Translations under genes and position numbers: made by a program
Notes under the pieces: model-generated
Database searches by the model: none
What the model was told of the DNA's origin: nothing
Seen by the model: the letters and a program-made list of their open reading frames with translations, nothing else
Shown here: in pieces, positions 33,421-61,026 of the stretch
Layout of the letters: each line of letters starts with the position of its first letter
How positions within the stretch are numbered: position 1 is the first letter of the stretch
Source of the DNA: Podarcis melisellensis
Lineage: Eukaryota
Reading direction: 5' to 3' (one strand)
Assembly (NCBI GenBank): GCA_964234715.1
Contig: OZ174282.1
DNA: 64,000 bases

Positions 33421-36400
33421 CACATGCTCAGGGGCATTCCTTCGTCACTCTTCCTTACGCGTGCCAAGAGTAAGCCCTGATATAAGCCTTGAGCCCCGGT
33501 AAGCACTGCTCTCACCACCACCACCAGCCCCTATTTTACAAGTGTGCCTCTTCAACGCCATGGAGCAATTGCACAGGCAAGTAGGTGCAGGCAGCCAGAA
33601 CTCATTTGTCCTTTGGAGAGAGGGAGGGATGCCCTTTCATAGAGAAAACGGCACTTCATCATTGCTCAAAGGGGTTATGAACATGAATTCACAGCCTCCT
33701 TCCTTTCTTTGGCTTAATCCATCACACTGAAGATGCTCTCCTCTCCTCTCTTGTCCTCTCCCCCACTACCGCGTTTGTTCAGGCTCCCAAAAAGAAAGGA
33801 GAAAAGAAAGGTGGCAAGAAGAAAGGTGCAAAAAGCCCTGTGGTGGATGTCGTCTCCCCGGAGGGCATGACCAAAGAGCAGGTGAGAAGGGGGTCACTTT
33901 GCAGTGGTAACAGAGAGGGTGCATTCTTAAAAATGTGTGGATGGGAAATAGAAACTACAATGCAAAGTGGTTTCTTGCCAACAAGAGGGAAACCAATCTA
34001 CCTAGAGTTACTTAGGGGACTCCATTTTCTAGCAGCCCCAGGATGATGGGAGTTGTAATCCAGCAACACCCTGCAGGCTACTCATGTTTCCCACCCCTGG
34101 CCTGTATCACATTAGAAAATGGTCAAGGTGTTTCTCATTTTGGGGTGGAGTGGAGTATGGGGTGCTTGGCCTACCCTCATTATCTCCGACCTTCCTGGCT
34201 AGGAATAAGACCAAGTGTGAGTCATGCAGTCCCTCAGCTGGCTTGTTGCAGGTCCACTCTTTCCATCCCTCTGACATTTCACTACAGCACTGAGGACCAG
34301 CATTGGGAGAAGCCACTATTTTGCCAGGGGTCTATGTTGTTCCTTACTACACCCTTCTGCATTCCATAGGGTAGCAAAACTAGGCACCTCTTCAGTATAG
34401 CTAAGCTCACAGTTCCATTTTACAGTTTGGGTACAGGTATTGTGAGAATATTGCACAGGAACAGCTTTTGCCATCCTGATGCCTTCCAGGTGTTTTGGGC
34501 TGCATCTCCCATTAACCCCAGCCAGCAAACCCATCAGTGTAGCTGATGGTAGATGACAACCAGCACATCTGGAAGGTACCAGGTTGGCAAAGACTGCCCT
34601 AAACATTCTAAGCTGATTTATCCACTTCCAGAGAGCAACAGACTCATGGAGCCAAGCCTCTCTCTAACCAGATAATTCATTCACCTATTTATCGTGCATT
34701 CTGAAATGAAACATTTGCACCCTTTCTGGAATTAGCCATGCTTCCCATGCCAGTTCACAGGAAAGCCTTGGCTTGAAAAGAAAAAGCTTTGGAATTCACT
34801 GAGTCAGAAAAGGCACAATGCCAGTAGTGGCGATGGTGGGCTCCCAGTCCTTCCTCTCGGCTCCAGCCTGGCTGTTGGCTGACCCTCTTCTTGGCTTTGC
34901 AGCTGGAGGAACACATGGGCCGCATTCGGGAGGAGCTGGACCGTGAGCGGGAAGAACGCAACTACTTCCAGCTGGAGCGAGACAAGATCCACACCTTCTG
35001 GGAGATCACTCGGAGGCAGCTGGATGAGAAGAAGGCTGAACTGCGCAACAAGGACCGCGAGATGGAGGAAGCCGAAGAGCGTCACCAGGTGGAGATCAAG
35101 GTAAGAGCCTGTGGACTTCACAGATCACAGAACTGTAGAGCTGGAAGGAATCCCAAGGCTTATATAGTCCATCCCCCTGCAGTGCAGGAATCACAGCTAA
35201 AGCATCCCTGACAGGTGAGTAATAAAACCATGAGCTGCTTTGTATGGAGTATGTATTTAAGTAAAATAAAACATTTCCCATTGGTACGAACCCAACAACC
35301 TTTTACTAGGGACCTTTTGCCTGTGAAACATGCTCTCTGCAACCATTGACCCATGCTGCCTCCACTTGGGGTTGAGCAGCTAGATATTGGCTTCGCCATC
35401 CCCGCAATGTTGTGGATGGAAAGTGGGGAAATGGCTACGGCATTGGAAGGGTCTATTCTTTTGGCATAAAGACATAGAGGCTCACATGCTCCTGAATCTT
35501 CTTCAGTTCCTGGTACTTGATTAACTTGGAGCCACGGTGCTGCAGACAGAGTTGGTCACCAGCTTGGTTGGTCTGGCACCCCTGGCTGGGGCACCACAAC
35601 CGACTTCCATCCCCTTCCCCACAAGTGCCTCTCATTTACTCAGGCCTCTGCAAAAGAGAGTACCTTGGCCAATGAGGGCCAATGCCTGCCTCGTCTTCCT
35701 TTTGTCTCAGGTTTACAAGCAGAAGGTGAAGCACCTGCTGTACGAGCACCAGAACAACATCACAGAGCTGAAGGCAGAGAGTACAGTGTCTATGAAGCTG
35801 GCCCAGAAGGATCACCGGTCCCAGGAGATGGAGCTGCGTAAGGACATGCGAACCTTGAAGGTGGAGCTGAAGGAGCAGGAGCTGTCCAACGAGATGGTGG
35901 TGAAGAACCTTCGGCTGGTATGTCTGAAGTGATACCGGACTTGGCTCTTGGGCTGGGCTCAGGCCAACTTTCGTTGAGTGCATGGTGTGCAGGTGGGAAG
36001 GAGAGGGGTGGTGGTTCTTAAACCTCAGTTGTTCCTCCAGAGCAAACCAGCCTTGGCTTTGCTTCTGAGCTAGGAGGAGTAGGCCTTTGTATATGCAACA
36101 TCTGTCACTAACCAGTATCATCATCTTGGCAGAAACAACAAGAAGACATAACACGATTGCGCAATGACTTTGAGAGGCAGGTGAAAGGTCAGTTCTGGGG
36201 CTCGCCACCAAAAACTGTGGGGTTTGGGTTTGGAAGGGAAAGCTATCTTTGTGCCCAGGCAAGGATCAGTGGGCCACAGTGTCACTTCATCCCTTGGGCA
36301 CCCTTTCTCGCACACATGCAGTGACAAGGGAGCTGCTTCCTTATGGCACAGTCTCACTCTTCTGGAAAGTGTATGTGTATGACTTTGTAGCCATGGTGTG

Positions 36401-39400
36401 TAAGGCCCATCTCATGAGTCCGCCCTATGTTGTGTGTAATTGAGGCTAAGTAGCAGCTTGATAGAGAGCACTGATTTGCGTAGGGCCTGTCTTGCAGACC
36501 AGCTCCTGTCTGTTTTGCAGTCATTCCGAGGGAGGGGCCTGAGGCTTCCTTGAAATGCCACATGCATTATAAGGAGGAAGATGACAGCAGTTCTAAGCTC
36601 CTCATCAAATTAAATGTGTCAAAATAGCTAGGCACAGGAGTGCCATTTGCTAGGCCTTCTATGAATTCCATCTCTGCTGGGAGCTTTGTAGAATGCCAGG
36701 CTCCATGGGCCCATCCTTTGCTCAGAGTTGTTTATATATAGTCTGAGCACTTCCAGTACCTTTGGGTGACAACATTTTCCAGTCAGCTGAGAGTCTTGCT
36801 TCGCCCTCTTGTTGGAGCTGGAGAACACTTTGCCCCATCTCCTCTTCCACACAGCATAGAGAAACAGCCCACAGATAGAGGCATGCATAGCCTTGTCACT
36901 TTTTTGCCTAGTAGAGCACTCAGTCTGCCCTGGGTGCTGCTTCCCCAGAGATCGAGGCCAAGTATGAGAAGAAGATGCGGGTTCTACGCGATGAGCTAGA
37001 CTTGCGCAGGAAGACTGAAATCCATGAGATTGAGGAGAGAAAGAATGGACAGATCAACACACTGATGAAGAATCATGAGAAGGCTTTCAGCGACATCAAG
37101 AACTACTACAACGATGTCACTCTTAATAACCTGGCACTTATCAACACCCTCAAGGTAAAAGACATGCACCACACGACACCATCCCCAAATCAGCCTGTTG
37201 CCAGGTAGTGGAAGGTCAAAGTGGATGGTGTTCATTGGGCTTTCTGTGTTTTGTTTTTTCTTCTGCTTTGGCTGATTTCTGTACTGCCATTGCTTTGGAG
37301 CCACTACATGTTGCATTTGTTTGCTCTGCCATTGTGGATACCTTGAGTCCTGGAGCTCCTCTTTTGTGCATCTCACTATGGACCAACCCTTGTTGTAGTT
37401 GAAGGTCATGTGTTTCCCATTTGGGGAAATGAACCATTCTGGTTTGGGGAGAAAGTCTGTTTCTATATTTTATATGTCAACCGCGACCTTGTTTGTTTGG
37501 AAATTTGTTCCATTCACTTCAGTGGGCCAGTCAAATGAGTCAGGATGCAGCCTTGGTTATCCTCAGGTGATTGAGCTGTTGTTTCTCTTTGCCTTGGTGG
37601 TGGTGGGTCCCATGGGAGGTTTGAGGAAGCATGTTCCAGACAGGTGGTCAGGACTGGTGGGATGAGGCTTGCTGCTTGTTTTTGAGGATCTGAGGCACAC
37701 CCAGCCTCCTTTCTTTGTGTGTGTCTTGGAGTACAGGAGCAGATGGAGGAGATGAAGAAGAAGGAGGACCATCTGGAGAAGGAGATGGCTGAAGTGCTGC
37801 TGCAGAACAAAAAGCTGGTGGAGCCACTGCAACGAGCCCGTGAAGAGGTGGCGGAGCTGCAGAAGAAACTGGCGCACTATGAAAAGGACAAGGCCATGTT
37901 GCATGTGAGTCCCAGGGCTCTGCATTCACCTTTGCTTCCTGTGTGTCCTGGCCAATGAGCTCTGGGTTACTCAGTAGGACTGACTCTCTGCTAGTTTGGT
38001 GTGAACAGCACTGGGCTATTTCTGCACCAGCCCACTTTCATGACACAGATTTTTATTTCCACTTTTGGTAGCAGTTTGCATTGTCTCTATTCTCATGTGC
38101 CCTTTATTTCCAGAGTTTGGAAATTTGTACTGTGTGAAATAGGCCCCACCTTTCTGTGATGTCCTTCAGTGCTAACAGTGGTCATTTAGAGTCTAGACAA
38201 ATGTTACTGCGCCTTCCATTCTAGTTTTTGTCCAGAACTTTGCTTTTTATTTTTATCAGTGTTTCAAGATGAGAGTTTCGTGATTTTACATGCAGCCACG
38301 TACTCACGACCAGAGATGTCTTTTTAGGTTTGTTCCCTTCTGATGCTGCACACTCCACCAAAGTTGTTGGTGTGTCTGAATGCACAACAGCTTTGCCATA
38401 ATCAAAAATAGACTCAACTACATTCAAAATACAACTGCAGAGCAATTGAGTTACTATGAGAAGAGGAAGGCAGGGGGCCATAAGGATCATGAAACATGCT
38501 GGAAGTTGGGGGCAAGAGACCCCTGAGCTGATGTTTCCAGGATGAGGGACTTGAATGATGCCCAGTCCCTGTGGAGCAGATAGAGGAACATAGTACTTTC
38601 CCATTCTTACAGTTTCTCCTTTGCACTGTCTGGTTTGGAGGTCAAAACCCATCAGTCCCTTCTGTGCACTAGGAACTGTGTGCGGCTGCTTTAACCTCCT
38701 TCTCTTCCCTCTCCAGCACACACATGCCCGTTTGAAAGTCACCGAGAAGGAATTAAAAGATCTCCAGTGGGAACATGAAGTGCTGCAGCAAAGGTTCATC
38801 AGGGTAGGGATCAAGAATCACTGTTGTGCTGTCGCTGAACTTAGAGTTGGGAAAGGGTTGGATTTGATGGGTGGGCTGTGGGACAGGATGAAAAATACGG
38901 GCCCATTTTCTGCAGATATCCAGTAGAGAGGTCTATAGAGCCACCCACCCACCCACCCACCCACCACCCATTGGGCCTTGAGAATTCTGTGGTCCTGGTT
39001 GTTTCTTGATGAGACCTTTAGAGCAGATGGACAAGTCTGAGCCAAAACTGCCTGCAATAGTCATTCCCTGTCATCTCCAAATTAGCTGTGTAAATTTTTG
39101 CGGTTCTTTTGGATTGCTTGAGCAGCTGGACTTTGTGTTTGTCTGAACAGCAGCATGTCTACTGCTGGGCTGGGCTGGTCATCAGTATGATTTAAAGAAG
39201 TGGGGACTGTGATACTGGAGAGGGGCAGCTCCCATCGGGGGTGGGGGGTGGAAGGGAGGGGCTCTCTTCAGTATAACTCATTAAGACATGGGGGCAGGTT
39301 TGCGTGCCATTCAGCATTGATCTGAGACCTCATTAGTTGCCTTTGAAAACTGGCTGCAGTGGTCCTGTCTTAATGAGGGGGTCTCTGACTAACAAGAATT

Positions 39401-42400
39401 GGGTCAGGCTGCCTCCCATCCCTCGTCCCCCACAGATCCTTGCAAAGTGCATTGGGAGAGAAAGGAGGCCTTTCTGTCCCCAAAGGCATCATTCTCTTGC
39501 TCTCCTGAGGCTGCTTAAAGCCCATGGCCTAGTCTACCATGCCTTGCTGGGTGGTCTGTTTCTGTTCCTGAAATGGGGGAAAGAGGTTGCTGCAGATTCC
39601 TCAGTTCTCTGGCTCCTGAGGAGGAGGCAAGCAAGCGTACTGGGGGCTTCCTTGGAGCTGCCCTCTATGACTGCTGCAAGGCCGAGGTTGAAAACAGGGG
39701 CTTGACTCTTCCTGATAAAGGTCAGCATATGGGAGCACAGCAAGGCAGTGGGTGGGCATTTGCATGGCACGCGCGCACGTACACACACACATGCACGCAC
39801 ACACATGCACATATAGCACAATGCAAGATGATGGTTTTAACTGATAAAAACCTAATCACCACCAGCCCTGTTTTCCAGCTCCCACTGCCTTCCCTGATAG
39901 CCTGAAGGGCTGCCTCAGAGCTCTGCATTGCTCCTCCCTCTGTGACTCACTAAAGTCCCAACTTTTGGAATCATTGCAACATATTTTCATCTGTGTTGGT
40001 TTGTGACAGAGGGGGTGGGCAGCTGTTGTCATTGGGTAGCTGGTTTTTTATTTTTGGAAGAAGACTTTTATGCACGAATGTTAGGACTATAGACAGTTGC
40101 CTAAATACACAGTCAGACCCTTCGTCCATGCAGCTCCGTCTTGTCTATGCACTGACTGGCAGTGGCTCTCAAGGCTTCACCTTTCCCAGCCCTCCCTGGG
40201 ATGACTCTGGGGTTGATGGTTCTCTGACAGGTGCAGGACGAGCGAGATGACCTGTACCAGAAATTTACCAAAGCCATTAATGAGGTGCAGCAGAAAACTG
40301 GCTTTAAGAACTTGTTGCTGGAGCGGAAGCTTCTCGGCCTCTCCAACATCCTGGAGAAGAAGGAGGTGCAGCTCAACGAGGTCCTGGCTGCCACCAACCT
40401 TGATCCCGGTGCTCTCAGTGTGGTCACCCGCAAGCTGGAGGTACTGTGCTTCTAATCACCATGAGGATTATAGAGAAGGTTTATAGATATTTTTCTAATA
40501 CCCTTCAGTTAAACAAACAGCTCCCAAGCCAGATGAGAGCAATCGGTCAGATTCCTTCTTGCTACTGTTTCAGATGGGGTTTGTCCTTGGGTTTCATATT
40601 ACCAAGATGGATTAGGCAAGATCTAGGTAAAACCTTGCAATGCACAGGGAAAAGGTGCACTGGCTAAAAGGGAGCTGCCAGGGGCTCACGGTGTGGGCAA
40701 GTGCAGGGAGTCATGCTTTAATAAGAGACTCTCATTCAGGGGCAATTAATAAATGTAGCCTGCACAGTATTTCAGAGGAGCTGCCCTTAGTTGTGCACAA
40801 GAGGCCCACAAGCATGAAAAGCCTTTGCCTCAGCCCTCCAAGCAATCAGAGCATGTACAGTAGTACCTTGGGTTACAAATGCTTTGGGTTACAAACGCTT
40901 TGGGTTACAAACTCCGTTAACCTGGAAGTAGTACCTCGGGTTGAGAATTTTGCCCCAGGATGAGAACAGAAATCGCACGCCGGCAACACAGCGGCAGCGA
41001 GAGGCCCCATTAGTGAAAGCGTGCCTCAGGTTAAGAATGTTTTGAGTTAAGAACGGACCTCTGGAATGAATTAAGTTCGTAACCCAAGGTACCACTGTAC
41101 CAACATTTCCATTTGCCAAGCAGGCTCTGAATGCACACGCACACAACTGGCCTCCAGTTGCCTCGAAGCTCCTGGGAGGTGTTTGTTTCCAGCAGCAGCT
41201 ATAGAAGTGAGTCACATGGGCAGTACTGTGGGCAGAAGGGACCCTCGCAGCAGTGACTGAACCAGTGGTGGGGTGAATTGCTCCACTGGGGATTGCTTTT
41301 CCTTCCTATCTGACCTGAGCCTCTTTCGTGCTTTCTTGGGACATAGAATGCCCAAGCAGTCAGCAAGTGTCTGTTGTGCTTCTGGCTGTGAGAATACACT
41401 TGGCACGAGGGTGCTGTGCCTGGGGAAATCTGCAGGAGCCAGATTGAAAGGGGAAGCTCCAGTGGTCAGAGACTTCAGTTTCTTTTCCTTCTGGCTGGTG
41501 GAGTTGGAAGAGATTCTACATGCAAATCTGCTGAACCTATGTGCCATTTATTCTGGTCCCAGAATCCGTTCAATACCCAGAACACATGTGCCCCTTTGCA
41601 GCATGTGAACTGTGTGAACTGAAGCGGCAATGTGCCCTCGTTGCCAGGGCGGTGTTTCCTGCTCTGCTGCTCAGTCTCCAGTGGAGATGGAAAGGGAGAG
41701 AGAGAATGAGCTCCTGGCTGCCTTCTCGGTTCCTTGCCTCCCTCCTCCTCTCCCTGCGGCCACTTGGGAGTGTCAGAATCTTCTAGGCACACAAGCGTGG
41801 CTTGGGGACTGCTTGCCACACAGCTTTCTCTCAACTCGTTCCACTCCACGGGGTTTCCCTGGTTGTTGATTTCCTAGCTGCCCGCTTTCTTTGCTAAGGT
41901 TGGGTTCTCTCTGACAGCACCCTGGTACACAGCAAGGCTATCTGCACTTTCAAAGCATTCCCCTGGCACATCAAGTTGTTTCTGGGGAGCAGGGGCTGCC
42001 CATCACGCTGCCAGGGCCCCTCCTCTCTGTGTTTCCAGCCCCAAGAGCCAAGGGAGGTTCTCCATCATAGGGACCTCTGTGGCCTCCTCACTCTTCAGGC
42101 TTCCTGTCCTGTCCAGTCTCTGAAATGCCTGATGGTATGGAAACAGAGTTATCTCCCGTGACTTGGCCTGCCTGGGAAGGGGGCTTAGTTAGCGGCTTCC
42201 ACATTCCAAGCAAGGCTGGCGCCAGTAACTGGAGATTCTTCCCAGAGGCAGCTGCTCCTTCCAGCAGGCCTCCCACATTCCTACCTTCAGCTGCTGCTTG
42301 CGCAGGAGGCACATCCACAGGGGATTCCCTGGGTATTGTAGCACCAGATCCTGTGCCAAATAGGGCAAAAAATGGCTTGGTGGCAGAAATGCCAGCCCAC

Positions 42401-43705
42401 AGCTCTCATCTCCCATTACTGGCGGGCAGCGCAGATGAGCCTTAATTTGAGTCACAAAGAGGAAATTGTGCAGGGAGGCAAGAGGCGCATTAGCTCCTGT
42501 TTGTAGATGGAGTGCTCCACTGTGATTGGTATGCCAAGTGTGGGATGCAGTACTGTATACAAAATTCAGCACCCATGAGAATCTCGGGTTTTACCTGATT
42601 TTGTAAAAGCAGGTTTCTAAACCTCATGGCCGTAGAGAGGCTTGGAAATACGTTGGCACTGCCTAATGAAATCATGGAAGCCAACCACAGACATATTAGG
42701 ACTTTCAGCATGCAGAATTTGCAGAAAGGAAAGAGCCAAGCACAAGACTGTGCTGCAGAAGGGCACTTAACTTTGCATAGGCCTGCCGTGGCCCATTAAG
42801 AAATGGCCAGAAGCTCTGGCTGGGCCTTGACTAGTCCCCTTGTGGGCCAGTTCACTTGCCTGATGTGTTAACACCCAAACAACCTTCCTTCACAGGATGT
42901 GCTGGATTCGAAAAACAATGCCATCAAGGACCTGCAGTATGAGCTAGCCAGAGTGTGCAAGGTAAGAGCTCCAGCTGGGGAGAACCCTGTAAATGTACTT
43001 GAATGTTGGAGCAAAATGTAGAGAGCAGGTCTCTTTAGACACAACCCAGGAAGGAAATATATTTTCCCTAGCAGTTGGCTTTTACTTATGCCTTGTTTGA
43101 AAGCCATTTATGTTAGCAGGAATTCACTATCCTGTGGCAGTGAGTTCCATAGGTTAATGCCAAGAAGTGTGAATAAGTACTTCCTCTGTCTTTTGTAATG
43201 CCCACTGCCTACCTATCTCAGTGAACAGCTGATGGGTTTGACAAATGTTGTACTAGCCATCGCTCCATCTGACCTACCAAGTTGCATCGTATTCACCCTC
43301 AGCCCCATTTTTCTGAGTTAACAAGTATGTTCTAAACATTTGTTCCTTGAGACGGTCTAGCCTGCAACCATTTTAGTTGGCCTTTTCCTGCTCTCTTGCA
43401 TCCTTTTGGAGAAATATGGATGCAGCCACCACTGCCATGGGTGCCTTGGGCTGGCTATTACCAAAGCATAGACAAGAGAAGTTGCTGTGTTATGGTATGT
43501 TATGGTATGTGATGTTTGATCCCTCTCCTCAACCTGCAATTGCCTCCCATTGCAGGCCCACAATGACTTGTTGCGGACGTACGAGGCCAAGCTCACAGCC
43601 TTTGGGATCCCTTTGGACAATTTGGGCTTCAAGCCCCTGGAGACCTCCGTGATCGGCCACACGCTGGGCCAGGGCCCTGCTGGGTTTGTCTCAACCCCCA
43701 CGTAG
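33264..43705 (+). CDS. GAS8: Growth arrest-specific 8 / dynein regulatory complex subunit 4 (482 aa), 11 exons
   Basis: Exons 33264-33266 (ATG only), 33783-33881, 34903-35100, 35711-35917, 36133-36187, 36949-37154, 37737-37904, 38717-38803, 40231-40440, 42896-42961, 43556-43705 (TAG); 1449 nt in frame. Translation MAPKKKG...[32 protein letters not shown]...[26 protein letters not shown] closely matches vertebrate GAS8/DRC4. Confidence 0.97.
40858..41097. mobile_element. Tc1/mariner (Tigger-like) MITE
   Basis: TIRs CAGTAGTACCTTGGGTTAC / GTAACCCAAGGTACCACTG; TA TSD at 40856-40857 and 41098-41099; internal 15-bp tandem TTGGGTTACAAA(T/C)GC. Confidence 0.85.
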
Positions 43706-43854
43706 CACAGCCTGACTTCATACTTTGGAATGCCTTCAGCCTAAGCCTTGTGTGCAAGCAAGCCACTGTCCCGCTCCTGCTGTGGCCGTAGAGGGGAGGG
43801 AGGGAGAGAGCAGCCCCCTGGAATGAGATTGCGTCTGCTCCAGCCCTCATTTGT

Positions 43855-43860
43855 ATTAAA
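43855..43860 (+). terminator. Candidate GAS8 polyadenylation signal
   Basis: ATTAAA 150 nt after the stop, followed by GT/T-rich sequence. Confidence 0.55.
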
Positions 43861-44481
43861 GAGGCCCTGTGGTGGGCTATTCAGTCTTCAGTCTCTGCAA
43901 AGCCTCCCTTTTTCTTTCCCACCCACGTCAAGGCAGAGCTTGGGGACTTGAAAAGCATCCTCCTCTTGATTAATGAGCCCCTGGAATACTTAATCCCACC
44001 TTATCTAGAGCCTCCAAAGTCCTCCACACCAATGTTGTGTCCACTCAAGCACCTCTGAAGAGCCTGGCTCCTGGATCCAGGCTAAAGGACTACCTGGTCC
44101 AGCATCCTGTTCCCCACAGTGGCCAAGCAGATGCCTCTGGGAAGCCCACAATCAGGACGTGAGTGCAGCAGCCCTCTCCCCACTCATATTCCCCAGCAAC
44201 TGAGGGAGCCCTACCTAATCAGTAGAGCACACGTGTGTCAAGGACCCAGACCCAATTCATGGCATCTCCAATTTAAAACAAGAGGCTTACAAGTATCAGA
44301 CTTTAGATTAATCTCACATTTACTGCACGGCAGCTACTCATGGCCAAGCCCCCAGCCAGAGGATTGGGCCAGAGGTGGCCGTGGATGTAACCACAGCTCT
44401 TCATCTGCTGGACTGCATCATCTCTCTCAGAACAGGCACCCCGGTTTGCTGAAGCAGCCCCTCCTGCTGGCCGGTCTCCCA

Positions 44482-45400
44482 CTAGCTTCCCCTGTAGGTG
44501 GTATAGGAATAAGGGCTGAGCAGCAAGGGAATATGCACTTTTTCTTCCTCAGTGATGGTGAAGACAATCTAAAGAGAGAGACAAGCAAGAGGATGTGTAA
44601 AGACAAGGGAGGGGGGAATAGCAGGAGGCTGGTAGTGCTCTTTGGTTTGAGATCCTTTCTTCGCTGCACTGGGCCTAGCCCATGAGAAGACATTTGTCAG
44701 GGGCCCAAATGCCTGGTCCAGAGCACCCTTAGTGCCCAGTCCTGGCACACTTCTGGCTTTGTGCTCTTTCAGGGATGTCCCATGCACATCTAGCTCTCCT
44801 ACCAACCACCTGGGCCTCTTCCTGCAGGTTTCTGAGGGACTTCACAGCGTGCAGCCTTCATAATGTGAAGTTTATGCTGATTTCTCCCATTTTCCAACGT
44901 TGTGCTTCTCCTGCCAGGAATTACATCCCTCAAAGGGCAATGAGTGGTGGTCCCTGCCATCATCAGTCCTCCCTATGTTGGAAGGAGCCTCCCCCCCCTT
45001 TCAGGTGTGAGTTTCATCTGGGAACCAAACTTACTTCCACATAAGGGTAAAAGCTGCTGTATCCTTGTTGCTCCCATTACTCCCTCGTCTCAAAGCGCAG
45101 CTTATAGGTGCCAGGTTTCAGCTCCCTGGGCATCGGGCTGTTTCTGTCCAAGCGCCCATCAGGATTTGTCTTGCTGGAACGGAATAAATGAGGCTGAAAC
45201 TGCAACGGCCCCAGCCCTACCGAGGGAGGGAGATTGTCCCGCTTCATCCCCTCCTACCTTCTCATGAGCTCTGCCCACGGACGTTGGGGATCCTCCAGCT
45301 TAGAGAAGTGCATGGCCAGGCCTTGGGCAGGGAGGCCAGTGAGCACGTTCAGTGCATGGACAGTCAGGAAAGCGTGGTGGACCTCATCTGAACTAGCCAC
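44482..45400 (-). pseudogene. URAH: 5-hydroxyisourate hydrolase (HIUase, transthyretin-like) exons with one in-frame TAA; probable 3' half of a cadherin-URAH fusion
   Basis: Exons 45400-45258 (VASSDEVHHAFLTVHALNVLTGLPAQGLAMHFSKLEDPQRPWAELMR), 45173-45035 (SKTNPDGRLDRNSPMPRELKPGTYKLRFETRE*WEQQGYSSFYPYVE) and 44568-44482 (IVFTITEEEKVHIPLLLSPYSYTTYRGS*). The HIUase His, DGR Arg, second His and C-terminal YRGS are all present. TAA at 45079-45077 replaces a conserved Tyr. Tail-to-tail position next to GAS8 is as for human URAHP. Pseudogene status is uncertain (single lesion). Confidence 0.9.
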
Positions 45401-46829
45401 CTGGGATTCAGAATGGAGAGCCGGGTGGAGCAAAAGCCTCTGTACGAGTTCCTCCCCCTCCCATTTTCCTAGGTCCACCAATTCCCAAAGGAAGATGTCC
45501 TTGCCACCCTCAGCAGCAGGCCCTTATTTTCCAAGCTCTTTCTTGCTGCCTTCAGCAGTTTTTCCTGTTTTTAAATGTTTGCTTTTTCTCCCAGGTGCTG
45601 TGTGCACGGGGGCTTTCTGTGAGGTGTTGTGGTTGTGGGGAGAGAGGGAGGACCCCACCCACTTCTCACCCATTCACCAGCTGTGTTTGTTCAAACTCTG
45701 CTGGCTCCTGGGTGAGGGGTTTTGTTGGGGGTGGGTGGGTTAAAGACAAGATGCCCTCGGCAGACCCTGCTTGCCTTCTGATGTCCGCACTGCCCATTCA
45801 TTTGCCCAAATTGTAGCCCTGCAGCTTGACATAGTGCCTGCCACTGTTTGTACAGAGAGGGCAGGTGAGCAAGTAATGAAGGTGCAGAGGAGGTTCAGGG
45901 GCAATGAAGGTCAGCAGTGGTCCCCACTGGCTGTGTCAGGATGGGCCTGGGCAGGTGCCTTACAACACCAGCCCCTTGACAGAAGCCCTGCCTGACAGAA
46001 GTGCATTCATCCACTCTTAAGCATGGCGGAGCAGTACTCCTGGGTTTCAAACAGAGGTCCTTCCCAGCCCTATCTGGAGGTGTTGGGGGTGAACCTAAGA
46101 ACACTGAGTTATGACCCCTCTCCACCCAGAAGGTGGGCCTGAACAATGGCAGCTCTGCTCCCTGTCCCATGTATGATTTCATTGCCTTCTTAAACATTTG
46201 ATCCCTGGCCACAGAGTTCCTTTACTTTCTGGCACATGCCATGAAACTCCCCAAGACAATCAAGAGTGTGGCATTCAAGCTTCTTGTTTTTCGTGAGCTG
46301 CAAGAAATATACATTCCCATCCCCTTGCCAAGTTTCCCAATGAAACACCAAAGCAGGAAGGCTGAGCCCACCCACCATCCTAGGATCTCTCACCACCTGG
46401 CGTCTCCCTCCTCCCTCCCTCTGTGGTAGTTGGTTTCTCTCATCCATTCTGGGGCATTTCTGATGCAGCCCCTTCTAACTCCACTTCCTACTTGCTTTCC
46501 ACTGGCAGGCTGCTTGTCTGTCATGACTCAGCAGAAAGTCTTAACCCTTTTGTTGCCACGAGGGCAGGCTCAATCGGGTGCCCCCTGAAAACATGAGAAA
46601 GGGGCCCAATTCATTTCATGGCAAGGGGGGAGGGTTCCATCTCCATCTCTACCCAGCCTAATCTGTAAAATATACATTTGAAGTTCTTGGGACTTCTCAC
46701 TGGAGTAAAATGCAGCAAGCATTTTGTGGGAGAACCAGCAATACTGTCATGCCCCAGCAAGAGCAAAAAGGAAGATACAGGAGCAGTTGCATGGTTACCC
46801 GAGAGTATTTGTGAGTTCCCAGTCCTTAC

Positions 46830-49800
46830 TTGGATCACTGCTGTTGCTGTAGTGCTAAGACCTTCTCCTAAGCAGTCTGTAGCCTGCAGGATCAGAGTGT
46901 ATTGGGGGGTTACCTGTAAACAAATATATCCATTAGCATTTGGGCAGAGGGGATCAAAGCACCTGAAGGCAAAGCAGTGTTGCGTAAGATCCTGAGAGCC
47001 CCACTGGCCATGTAACTCGAGGAAACTTCAAACTCACTAGGGTACTTCCAGATACAGCAAACTGAAATGGGACAAAGCTGTTATGCTAGACCAGGCACAG
47101 GCAAACTCAGCCCTCCAGATTTTTTGGGACTACAGTTCCCATCATCCCTGACCACTGGTCCTGCTAGCTAGGGATCATGCGAGTTGTAGACCAAAAACAT
47201 CTTGAGGGCCAAGTTTGCCTATGCCTATGCTAGACCACCCTTGTTATTAGGAATATGTGAAAAGAAAATTCTTCATTATTGCAAACCATACAGTTAAAGC
47301 ACATGACTTCCCCCAGAGAATCTGGGCAAATGTAATTTGCCCCTCACAGAGCTACAATTCCCAGTACCCTTGACAAACTGCAGTTCCCAGGATTCTTTGG
47401 AGGAAGTCATGTGCTTTATATGTGTACAGCTTATGTCCACTTCATCTTCTGTTTAGGGCAGCCCTCCAGATATTGGAAGGTGGCAGTCATGCTGTTCATC
47501 TGCTCCAGACTCAAAGCCTTCCCTCTTCTCTTTCAGAAATCCCTTGCAAGCCCCTCCCCATCCTGCTTGGTCCCCCTCCAGCTAGCCTCTAATCCACCAG
47601 TGCCTTATGGCCCAGTGTTTCCACTAGGAGTGAAGCACAGCAGCAGAGCCAAGGGTTGCCTCAAAGTGGAAATTTGGCATCTTTAATCATGCCCTCTCCC
47701 TACACAGCCAGGACCCAGCCACTTACCGTTCTGTCAAGTCCTGGTTTGTTCAAGCTGATGACCCCTGTTCTATTATCGATGGCAAACATTTGGCTCTGTG
47801 GCTTTGTGGGGGTCTGGATATCGAGGGAGTAGGTGATTACTCCATTGTAGGAATTCACAGCGTCATCTATGTCAGTGGCTGATACTTGTGTCACAAAGGT
47901 ACCTGGGTGCGTGTGCCACAAAAGTCCAAAGTTCAGCTTCTGAAGTGCATCACACACATACCCGCAACATAGCCGATCATCCCAGCTTGGAGGTCAAATT
48001 GACTCTGCCCCAGACAGCTCCGAAATTACCACTTAGCCTCTGAGTGAATGCAAACTGTGCAGCAGCTGGGTGCGATCTGCACTACTTTTATGCCAGTCCG
48101 CAAGTTATGGTGGGCTCAGTAGTGACCGCCCAGGCCATACAGATAGAAAAAAGCACAGTTAGGGGCCTGGGTTTTGCACACATTATACCCCCTCCCTTTG
48201 TGGGTGCTCCTTCCATAAAAAATGGGCAAAGGATATAGGCATTCAGAGGCAAATAGGGGTTTCCATACATTCAGTTCATGCATGTGCAACCAGACAGACA
48301 GACACGTACCTGGCGGGGCTCCTTCTGCTATGGAGCCATGGAAGATGCTCTGGGTAAAACGGGGCTTGTTGTCATTCTGATCAAGCACCTCGATGACGAT
48401 CTCTGTGGGGTTCCTCACAGGCTGCCCAGTTGCACTTACAGCGTGAAGAAAGAGCTGCAGAGCAAGCAGGGTAGCAATTGAGACACTCCCCAAAGCTGCC
48501 TCTCACCCTCCCAGACACCTTCCCACAAGAGTGTAGAGTTGCCCTTCTCTTCACACCAAGAGCACCCAGGAATTTACATTAGGGGCTAAAAAGTATTTAG
48601 ATACTGTATGCTGAGAATTCAAAAATGAAACTAAGCTGAACTTTCTCCTCCTTCCCATAAATAATGGTTGCTAATACTATTGCTTCCTGGGGATTCCCCA
48701 ATAACTGACATAAAGCAGCAGCAAACATGTGATTTCCACTCTTTCCCTGCCCCATAACACATAGCAGCCTTCCCCAACCTGGTGCTCTCCAGCAGTTTTG
48801 AACTACGAGTCCCATCAGCTCCAGCCAGCACAGCTATATGATGCTTGGGCTGATGGCAGCAGTAGTCCAAAGGATCTGGAAGGCACCCGGTTGGCAAAGG
48901 CAGTTTTAAGAGGTGCTGGGAGGTCCCAGGGTGACAGAAGCTAGCACAAAGGGACTTACAATGTATTTGTCTTTGGTCTCTCTGTCCAATGGCATGGTCA
49001 CCATCAGCCAGCCTGTCTCTCTTTCAAGGATGAAGATGCCTTGAGGAGGTCTGTCTGCACCAGTCCCAGTGACACTGTAGAAAGTCATGCCATCTTTACC
49101 TACCTGGTTGCAAATGAACATGTCAAAACTGAGAAGGTCTGTTTTCTTGTTGCCTCCCTCAGAGGTAGAACACAGAGAGGGATTCTGAGCAGATTCATAG
49201 GAGGAAAAGAAGTCCCCCGAGCATAGTGGTTCTGAGCTGTTCAAGGCAGATGAAGAGAAAGAGGCAGTTGCCCTCTCTGTCTATACCTGCAGCAGACGCT
49301 TGGGGTAGGGACCGATTCCATTCTCCATGACCAATATTGGAGGCAGAAGTTGCAAATCCCTTTTCTGCCTCTTCAGATCAAGTCTGGATTCTGGAAAGGT
49401 CAGCACTTCTGCCCAAGCAAATAGGAAGGAGACCTGCAAGGGGGAAAGAGAGTTGCATATTTATTTATTTTTTAAAAACCCTCATTCAGAGCCCAATCCC
49501 ATGGCATCTTCTATGTGAAGACAAGTTTGGCACTCCTTAAGATTTGTAGGGATCTCGGGACAGGACAGTGCTGAACCTCAGGATTCAGTCCTGGAACATG
49601 TGAAGGAAGACACGTCCTGGAATCTGGACACACCTCTATGTCAAGAGTATCTTCCTTCTATCTTAAATGTCAGTATTGGGTTTGCATTACTGTTATTTAC
49701 CTGAAGTCCTTTCACTTCATCTACCTGCCACAGGTAGCAACCAGTCTGTTTTGCAGCCTCCAATGAGCAGTAGTCAAGGGTAGAGCTGATGAGAGTGGAG

Positions 49801-50604
49801 ATGGGCCAAGAGGCCTTGCCACGGCTCCCACACCCATGGCCACCATCTTGTTGACCCCTTGGGCTAGCCTTATTTGTGTTATCTGATCCCTCTGCAAGGC
49901 CAGATGCTTTGCAGTCCATGGAAGATTCATGGTCCCTGTTGACAGTTTAAAGGTTGGTGCTCCCTGGTGGTTGTTTTTAAAGGAAATGCATGTTTGCTGA
50001 TTCAACATTAGTTTGGAACATTGGCAACTGCTCTTATCTTCTCAAAACCTATTTGCTTTGAACAACTATGCTGCCGGTAGAGTACAGTGTAGAGAGACAC
50101 AAGACCAATATTATGAAACCTTCCTCAGCCCAGTAACATCTGCATGCTCATTCGATAGTCACATCTCCTCCACACTCTGTTCATGCTCGTCTTCATCTTT
50201 ATCCCCACACCCCAGCTCTTCCACAAGGCCATGTTCAACACAGCTGGGGGACAGCACCTGTACTTTGCACACAGGAATTCCCAGATTCAAACCCAGCCGC
50301 TGCCATCCTTAAGGATTTCTGGTTTCAGCAGCACAGCAAAATCACTGCCTGGAGTCTTGGGGAACTGCTACTAGTCAACACTAGTTGGACAAAGAGCCTG
50401 GTCTGGTGTGATAAGGTTGGTTCATGTGTTGGTACCTCTTCTGCACCTACAAAACCCTTAACCCAGCCCCTCCACCGTTAATGCCAAGAAGATCCTTCTA
50501 CAACACCAAAGATACTAGCCCCGCTTCACTTTCTCTTTGGAGGACAATCCTACCTGAGAGTGAAGAACCAGGAAGAGCAGGAGGCTGACCCTAAAGAAGC
50601 ACAT
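46830..50604 (-). CDS. Truncated type I cadherin-like gene (signal peptide, furin site, EC1, EC2); probable 5' half of a cadherin-URAH fusion
   Basis: Exons 50604-50554 ([17 protein letters not shown]), 49433-49287 ([49 protein letters not shown]), 49103-48960 (...[35 protein letters not shown]...), 48454-48310 (LFLHAV...DQNDNKPRF...; 145 nt), 47902-47727 (ATDIDD...; 176 nt) and 46913-46830 ([28 protein letters not shown]). All GT-AG with no stops or frameshifts; the 145- and 176-nt exons match CDH1 exon 6/7 sizes as recalled. Confidence 0.88.
47092..47227. mobile_element. Palindromic hAT-type MITE (high-copy family)
   Basis: TIRs CAGGCACAGGCAAACT / AGTTTGCCTATGCCTA; 8-bp TSD TGCTAGAC (47084-47091, 47228-47235). 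Related copies with the GGACTACAACTCCCATCA core at ~4990, 24357, 31802, 34462, 48765, 56607 and 59592. Confidence 0.8.
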
Positions 50605-53419: not shown

Positions 53420-54430
53420 AACATTAAAAAAAATAAAAATGTAATTTTCAGTTATATACATTTCAATAGTTTTACAGGCATTTTAACATTTCAAAACTCG
53501 ACTTCCTCCTCTTTCTACAGTTCCTTAAATTTCTATTTATTATTTCCTGCATATTCTGAATTAACTTATTCTTTTATTCATCTACTTTAATTATTTACTC
53601 TTATGAAACTGCAGGTCATTACAATAATCCTGCCAATGTCCTTATTTGTTTGCAATTTATTTGTACATATTCAGTAAGCCATTTCCATTCTTTAATTTTT
53701 TATATATATAAATGTTTATTAGGGATATAAATATTTATTAGGGCATTTCCATTCTTTTATAAAAAGTTTGTTGTCTTGATTTCTTATTTTTCTGGGAAGT
53801 TTTGCCATTTCTGCATAGCCCATGAGTTTTTGTATCCGGTCGTCTTTCGTTGTGACTTCTTCTTTCCATTTTTGGGCTAATAACATTCTTGCGGCTGTAG
53901 TCGCATACTTAAATAAATTTCTATACTGTTTAGGTAGTTCTACCCCTATAATTCCCAGAAGGAAATCTTCTGTTTTTATTTTATTTTTACAAATGTTGTT
54001 TTAAACATATTTTTCAATTCATTATATATCATTTCCCAGTATGCTTTAACTAGGACCACCATATATGATAGAAAGTACCTTCTTTCTCTTTGCATTTCCA
54101 ACACTTATTTGATTTAGATTTATACATTTTTGCCAGTTTACTCGGTGTTAGATACCTTCTATATAACATTTTCATATAGTTTTCTCTGAAACCATAGCAT
54201 GCTGTAAATTTTATATGTGTGTTCCACAATTGTTCCCATGCTTCCGTATCTATATTATAACCAATATCTATTGCCCAATGTCTCACTGAAGATTTTACTT
54301 GCTCATCCTTTGTTTCCCAGTCCAATAATAACTTACACATTTTAGACAGCACTTTAACATTACATTCCAACAGATCTCTCTCCATTTTTGATACCTGTTC
54401 CCCAAACCCTCATTTCTTATCTTTCTACTC
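53420..54430 (-). mobile_element. 5'-truncated L1-clade LINE, ORF2 C-terminus and 3' UTR
   Basis: ORF 54050-54385 ends in the L1-type zinc knuckle YLTPSKL...CWKCKEKEGTFYHIWW; AT-rich and stop-interrupted. Boundaries approximate. Confidence 0.8.
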
Positions 54431-60886: not shown

Positions 60887-61026
60887 NNNNNNNNNNNNNN
60901 NNNNNNNNNNNNNNNNNNNNNNNNNNNNNNNNNNNNNNNNNNNNNNNNNNNNNNNNNNNNNNNNNNNNNNNNNNNNNNNNNNNNNNNNNNNNNNNNNNNN
61001 NNNNNNNNNNNNNNNNNNNNNNNNNN
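60887..61026. other. Assembly gap (run of N) at the cadherin CpG-island edge
   Basis: About 140 N; true length unknown. Confidence 0.99.

Follow-up and report, generated by a model that had tools for sequence, protein, structure and literature searches.

The stretch of Podarcis melisellensis DNA analyzed here, referred to as the window, is 64,000 nt long (contig OZ174282.1, assembly GCA_964234715.1). Its minus strand carries a gene in which cadherin exons are joined to exons for an HIUase domain. The nine exons (Table 1) total 1116 nt and hold 371 codons in addition to the normal stop, a TAG at positions 44484–44482. The start codon ATG is kept, each of the eight introns shows GT..AG ends, and over its nine exons the gene is colinear with the 371 aa models found in Podarcis. 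Sequencing runs were read, over exons 2–9, as Logan contigs with coded organism names; a contig of this type may combine two haplotypes as a mosaic. The species of the window is represented by two samples, S1 (run X1) and S2 (run X4, from another study).

Table 1. Features of the cadherin-HIUase gene in the window.
Feature	Position	Strand	Description	Basis
Exon 1	50554..50604	-	ATG and hydrophobic leader, 17 codons, same as in P. muralis	relatives' proteins, frame check
Exon 2	49287..49433	-	RQKRD furin-type site and start of EC1; usual Trp2 replaced (DLQLLPP)	relatives' proteins, frame check, run contigs
Exon 3	48960..49103	-	cadherin EC1	PF00028, E-value = 2.1e-7
Exon 4	48310..48454	-	cadherin EC1/EC2 linker, DQNDN calcium motif	relatives' proteins, frame check, run contigs
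Exon 5	47727..47902	-	cadherin EC2	PF00028, E-value = 1.1e-8
Exon 6	46830..46913	-	last part of cadherin EC2; spliced to HIUase exon 7	relatives' proteins, profile search, X15 contigs
Candidate alternative first exon	46373..46447	-	ATG kept, MDERNQLPQ...	Lacerta agilis gene models
Exon 7	45258..45400	-	143 nt, first HIUase exon; His12-equivalent in TVHALN	X15 joint 45398>46828 (cut +2)
Exon 8	45035..45173	-	139 nt, middle HIUase exon	splice sites; PF00576 37–66; X15 joints 44568>45035, ~45174>45258
Premature stop	45077..45079	-	TAA, ancestral TAC (Tyr)	window sequence and letters in runs X1, X4, X5, X15
Exon 9 (last)	44482..44568	-	His103, Pro105, Leu107, YRGS; intact in frame	PF00576 83–109, E-value = 4.7e-10

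The pieces encoded by exons 7–9 match the HIUase/transthyretin family (PF00576) at profile positions 1–31, 37–66 and 83–109 of 109. Exon 7, which is joined to cadherin exon 6 by splicing, does not contain its own ATG. The intact P. muralis orthologue matches PF00576 over positions 1–109 with an E-value = 4.9e-34, and its best PDB matches are the HIUases 7KCN and 2H1X. Database searches used single exons or the proteins of relatives. In the PDB, individual exon pieces were short and found weak or no matches, and the intact orthologue was used for mapping.

On the plus strand a GAS8-like gene extends over positions 33700–40500, convergent with the HIUase gene, and shows the GAS domain (PF13851) in three exon-bearing frames. 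These GAS-domain exons, at 36.9–40.5 kb, and the HIUase exons are in a tail-to-tail arrangement. In the human genome URAHP adjoins GAS8, which would place the HIUase gene of the window in the same chromosomal neighborhood, and we take this to mark the ancestral URAH locus and not a stray copy. A second lacertid HIUase cluster was not found among the best 120 word-search matches, which is weak evidence against a paralogue.

Several other features were seen in the window. No AATAAA or ATTAAA is present within approximately 1.08 kb past the normal stop (43401–44481, minus strand), so that the sequence does not make plain where the transcript ends. Two introns contain very high-copy interspersed repeats, at 47020–47420 and 48620–49020. 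Summed contig word depth reaches 3.4 million in the first and 14 thousand in the second, compared with approximately 50–80 for single-copy sequence, and in the run contigs both show many loose ends and strand-switch joints. The minus strand at 53722–54409 displays open frames of 119 aa and 93 aa, which resemble the C-terminal region of an ORF2 of the L1/Tx1 type; the 119 aa frame gave no Pfam match. A run of 140 N is situated inside a G+C-rich stretch at 60887–61026.

The initial annotation, made from the DNA letters, described a single premature TAA in the HIUase part of the gene, produced by a one-base change of TAC or TAT at a conserved tyrosine. The description holds, and the original codon can be specified as TAC. 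The minus strand at 45079–45077 reads TAA in the context GAG ACG AGG GAG TAA TGG GAG CAA, and in the protein the stop falls in exon 8 between FETRE and WEQQG...FYPYVE. Exon 8 starts at 45173 behind an AG acceptor and ends at 45035 before a GTAAGT donor. The coding strand has undergone a C>A transversion (G>T at 45077 when read on the plus strand), which gives Tyr329stop. The TAA is codon 329 of 371 and the sole in-frame stop before the normal end. No frameshift was found, so that with the ATG and splice sites described above the TAA is, as proposed, the only lesion in the nine exons. The predicted 328 aa product, the loss of 43 residues and the distance of 42 nt from the stop to the exon 8–9 junction, which is the last junction (45076–45035), are all arithmetically correct on the 1116-nt, nine-exon model. 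Because of the TAA at codon 329, the window does not contain an uninterrupted frame for the full eight-strand PF00576 domain.

Two ways around the stop were considered and set aside. Selenocysteine or other recoding was dropped, the codon being TAA and no supporting feature having been seen. Rescue by skipping of exon 8 was rejected because removal of a 139-nt exon would shift the frame.

The stop aligns with Tyr76 of the zebrafish HIUase (2H1X). Tyrosine is found at this site in 40 of 42 sauropsid proteins, and both exceptions, which carry phenylalanine, are isoforms of the newer P. muralis annotation. In a wider set that includes birds, amphibians, fishes and bacteria, tyrosine is present in 118 of 120 sequences and phenylalanine in the rest. 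Comparison of the orthologous codon in relatives, which had been proposed as a check, shows that tyrosine is kept in Podarcis lilfordi, P. raffonei and one P. muralis version (.1), as well as in Lacerta agilis and Zootoca vivipara. Within P. muralis the codon varies, XP_028595730.1 carrying Tyr and XP_028595730.2, from the newer assembly, carrying Phe. Thus a near-invariant codon has changed twice independently in the genus, once from TAC to a Phe codon and once from TAC to TAA.

Ten residues line the HIUase channel: His12, Asp50, Arg52, His103, Pro105, Leu107 and Tyr116–Ser119 (2026 review, PMC13751858). When aligned with 2H1X, all ten are encoded in the window frame, but seven of the ten lie after the stop. 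The equivalents of Asp50 and Arg52 precede the stop in exon 8, which has 14 further codons after it. The residues past the stop are His103, Pro105, Leu107 and the Tyr-Arg-Gly-Ser sequence. The second catalytic His and the YRGS motif, which the initial annotation had listed as lost, are indeed encoded in exon 9. The P. muralis orthologue, as modelled by AlphaFold (pLDDT >90 around the tyrosine), has this residue, Y106, in its single helix, positions 104–109; strands at 118–125, 130–138 and 141–144 follow. From the fold, together with the review's mutational data on Tyr116 (PMC13751858), we infer that loss of strands F–H and of seven channel residues must abolish both HIUase activity and transthyretin-type assembly.

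Evidence for the transcript comes from a relative, organism G, whose spliced RNA is represented by run X15. The X15 contigs join exons 9-8-7-6, 6-5, 5-4, 4-3 and 3-2 with GT..AG ends. Depth in the spliced contigs is 180–296, compared with 14 in an unspliced contig across 45375–46857. The chimeric cadherin-HIUase mRNA is therefore real in this relative. The exon 8–9 junction is confirmed by an X15 joint with GT..AG ends. An X15 contig extends past the normal stop, with approximately 60 nt aligned to the window and a further 110 nt that run off the end of the alignment. Of the 30 letters shown for this overhang, 24 match the window downstream of the normal stop, which argues against a closely following 3′UTR intron.

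Stops situated less than about 50–55 nt upstream of the last exon junction usually escape EJC-dependent nonsense-mediated decay (NMD), a rule of Nagy and Maquat that was established in mammals. The geometry for escape that had been pointed out for the TAA is right, the last junction being supported by the relative's spliced RNA, and with 42 nt to that junction the TAA mRNA is predicted to escape NMD.

The reality of the base itself was assessed from the sequencing runs. In X1 (organism A, sample S1) a 2376-nt contig over 44420–46495 has T at 45077 and thus reads TAA. The contig differs from the window at six sites (44729, 44747, 44835, 44846, 45001 and 45189), two of which stand 76 and 112 nt from the stop. 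Given these six nearby differences, the contig was not copied from the assembly, and the TAA is present on at least two haplotypes of the window lineage. An error of assembly or consensus had been among the original suggestions, the animal then really having TAC and an intact gene. A one-base difference in an otherwise perfect and strongly conserved frame is what such an error would look like, and X1 is not fully independent if S1 is the assembled animal. However, the Logan contigs came from another assembler that worked on the reads of the run itself, they carry the T on a slightly different haplotype, and substitution errors of this type are rare in modern assemblies. An error is accordingly disfavored and appears very improbable.

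S1 may be the assembled animal, as it shows two alleles at 48054–48173, one of which is identical to the window. If so, the animal is probably homozygous for the TAA, as read from contigs that are possible mosaics. If S1 is another animal, a second carrier of the stop exists. Compared with the window, X1 also lacks 25 nt at 47630.

Sample S2 gives a different result. X4, which bears the organism A label, has G at 45077 and thus the codon TAC, and the same letter is found in X5 (DNA of organism B) and in the spliced RNA of X15. TAC in these three runs indicates that it is the ancestral codon. Both alleles are therefore found under one species label, TAA in the window and S1 and TAC in S2, with the limits that only two samples are involved and that the S2 haplotype is divergent. 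X4 sides with organisms B and G, against the window, at 44503, 44533, 44551, 44574, 44596, 45338, 45356, 46401 and 46415 and at many sites in the 49.7–50.2 kb region, giving more than 10 nearby sites overall. An insertion of 17 nt after 46359, which neither the window nor X1 has, is common to X4 and X5.

X4 may thus belong to another deep lineage within the species and not to the population of the window. This bears on the possibility of a species-wide fixed loss, in which the TAA is fixed and X4 is not conspecific but a cryptic lineage, a hybrid, an introgressed tract or a wrongly labelled sample. The letters that X4 has in common with organisms B and G, its share of the words of the window (0.72, compared with 0.90 for X1), and the TAA on two different window-lineage haplotypes are all consistent with such a loss. 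But X4 carries the same organism code as X1 and is clearly nearer to the window than organisms B–F, for which the share is 0.47–0.53. Any fixation must also have been very recent, there being no second lesion and, as described below, five synonymous changes to no missense change. Species-wide fixation is therefore considered unlikely, although it deserves some weight. The divergence of X4 is the reason that a segregating allele and an allele fixed in one lineage are kept together in the reading that we prefer, a stop that is not species-wide.

The age of the stop can be judged from the other changes in the HIUase exons. Five more positions are specific to the window and X1 (44503, 44533, 44551, 45338 and 45356), and all are synonymous third-position changes. 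Since 22–28% of random changes to these exons would be synonymous, the probability of five of five under neutrality is P = 0.0006–0.002. Constraint downstream of the stop, a proposed check on pseudogene status, is borne out in that three of three changes there are synonymous (P = 0.011–0.023), a result obtained by comparing letters in run contigs. With five synonymous changes and no missense change, a missense build-up of the kind that accompanies relaxed constraint is not seen. Because all five lineage-specific changes are synonymous, the HIUase domain was under purifying selection for most of the history of the lineage, until recently, with the stop as the latest event.

The proteins give a similar picture. 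Apart from the stop, a comparison of 120 residues of the HIUase part with other Podarcis shows 0–1 differences, and none with P. muralis.1 and P. lilfordi. The cadherin part differs from the P. lilfordi, P. raffonei and P. muralis proteins, the nearest that were found, at 7–9 of 248 residues, and none is an exact match to the window. Between the Podarcis proteins themselves, 4–12 of 249 residues differ in the cadherin part (4 between the two P. muralis versions) and 0–2 in the HIUase part. A fast-changing cadherin part with its Trp2 adhesion motif replaced is thus found beside a near-frozen HIUase part in Podarcis.

Sauropsids have no liver uricase and no URAD, while Urah is reported to be highly expressed in the sauropsid liver and URAH to be tightly constrained (PMC10517255). 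As reptiles are uricotelic without these two enzymes, relaxed constraint might be expected, and an old unitary pseudogene, like URAH of hominoids, would be one explanation of the stop. The liver expression speaks against it, as do the single lesion, the intact genes of relatives and the almost invariant HIUase part across lacertids. The lesion is neither fixed under the species label nor shared with relatives: X4, X5 and X15 read TAC and five lacertid annotations are intact. An old pseudogene with further lesions common to relatives, which the initial annotation gave as the finding that would overturn a recent loss, is rejected as extremely improbable. The suggestion of a very recent loss or a polymorphic null allele gains support from the TAC in S2, in another species and in a relative's RNA, and from the five synonymous changes.

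A further explanation is that the truncation is functional, with selection for the 328 aa EC1–EC2 plus HIUase stub, or that the TAA is read through to full length. With 42 nt to the last junction the mRNA would be stable, the cadherin part is intact and the downstream codons show synonymous change only. A recent origin of the stop explains the synonymous pattern equally well, however. UAA terminates translation more efficiently than the other stop codons, and there is no evident signal for readthrough. Of the eight strands that make up the fold, three are missing from the 79 residues that remain of the HIUase part, and in relatives the whole domain is nearly unchanged. Functional truncation or readthrough is thus quite improbable.

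Taken together, the evidence indicates that Tyr329stop is probably a real and young loss-of-function allele that is not species-wide, being either segregating or fixed in one lineage or population only. The TAC to TAA change would end the HIUase domain inside its only helix and remove strands F–H. With seven of the ten active-site residues gone, the product would be neither an HIUase nor a transthyretin-type oligomer. As the mRNA would escape NMD by the 50–55-nt rule, the predicted product is a secreted EC1–EC2 cadherin piece carrying an unfoldable stub of 79 residues.

Shorter products of the gene are also suggested by gene models. Lacerta agilis models join a first exon of the type listed in Table 1 as a candidate alternative first exon to exon 7, giving a leaderless, stand-alone HIUase of 140–146 aa, and one Lacerta isoform splices the signal-peptide exon straight to the HIUase exons. 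In the window the candidate exon (46447–46373) is conserved and shows two GT donors, seen by eye from the translated sequence. Splicing of this exon was not seen in the X15 RNA contigs, where only an unspliced contig covers it. Any short isoforms that start from this exon or arise from a leader-to-exon 7 splice would carry the stop as well, and would be stubs of less than 105 aa.

The fusion of cadherin and HIUase domains is not limited to Podarcis. Models that combine PF00028 and PF00576 are found in snakes, Elgaria, Rhineura, Hemicordylus, geckos, lacertids, turtles, and ducks and geese. The proteins annotated as cadherin-1-like in P. muralis (XP_028595730), P. raffonei (XP_053255873) and Notechis (XP_026540608) carry the same two domains as the window gene. 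A snake HIUase found with the exon 7 open frame belongs to a 90% cluster that includes a 486 aa cadherin-1-like protein. The fusion models with this annotation carry a secretory leader and EC1–EC2 or EC1–EC3 plus HIUase. The 371 aa cadherin-1-like models of Podarcis are intact, whereas the window allele ends at residue 328, its HIUase part differing by the stop alone. Elgaria and Gekko kuhli each display two distinct HIUase-bearing models on one contig, which suggests local duplication of the HIUase locus in these lineages. No description of a cadherin-HIUase fusion was found among the papers listed by a literature search for cadherin with HIUase or hydroxyisourate hydrolase.

The nearest known parallel is URAHP, the HIU hydrolase gene inactivated in hominoids and reportedly in elephants and the manatee, where the losses are fixed, show several lesions and came after the inactivation of uricase (PMC10517255). 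Common to both cases is a coding lesion that disables this enzyme gene. The window gene differs from URAHP in having a single lesion, not fixed under the species label, in having been constrained until recently, and in its fusion with a cadherin. With respect to NMD-escaping stops, the TAA fits the Nagy and Maquat rule by distance, the escape here being a prediction from a mammalian rule. Human ACTN3 R577X and CASP12 are segregating natural nonsense alleles of conserved genes. The window allele resembles these as a single nonsense change in an intact and constrained gene that is present in some individuals or lineages only.

As an allele, Tyr329stop is ordinary in kind. Its value is as a natural knockout within the sauropsid cadherin-HIUase fusion. 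Homozygotes for the TAA would reveal what loss of the HIUase domain costs the animal, and heterozygotes would offer a direct test of the 50–55-nt NMD rule in a reptile. A more speculative view, to which we give little weight, is that a whole Podarcis lineage is a natural knockout of the HIUase domain and still makes the secreted EC1–EC2 part from an NMD-immune mRNA. If this were true, either the conserved HIUase moiety would be dispensable or the two moieties would be functionally separable, and the lineage would serve as a wild model for the role of the fusion in uricotelic animals.
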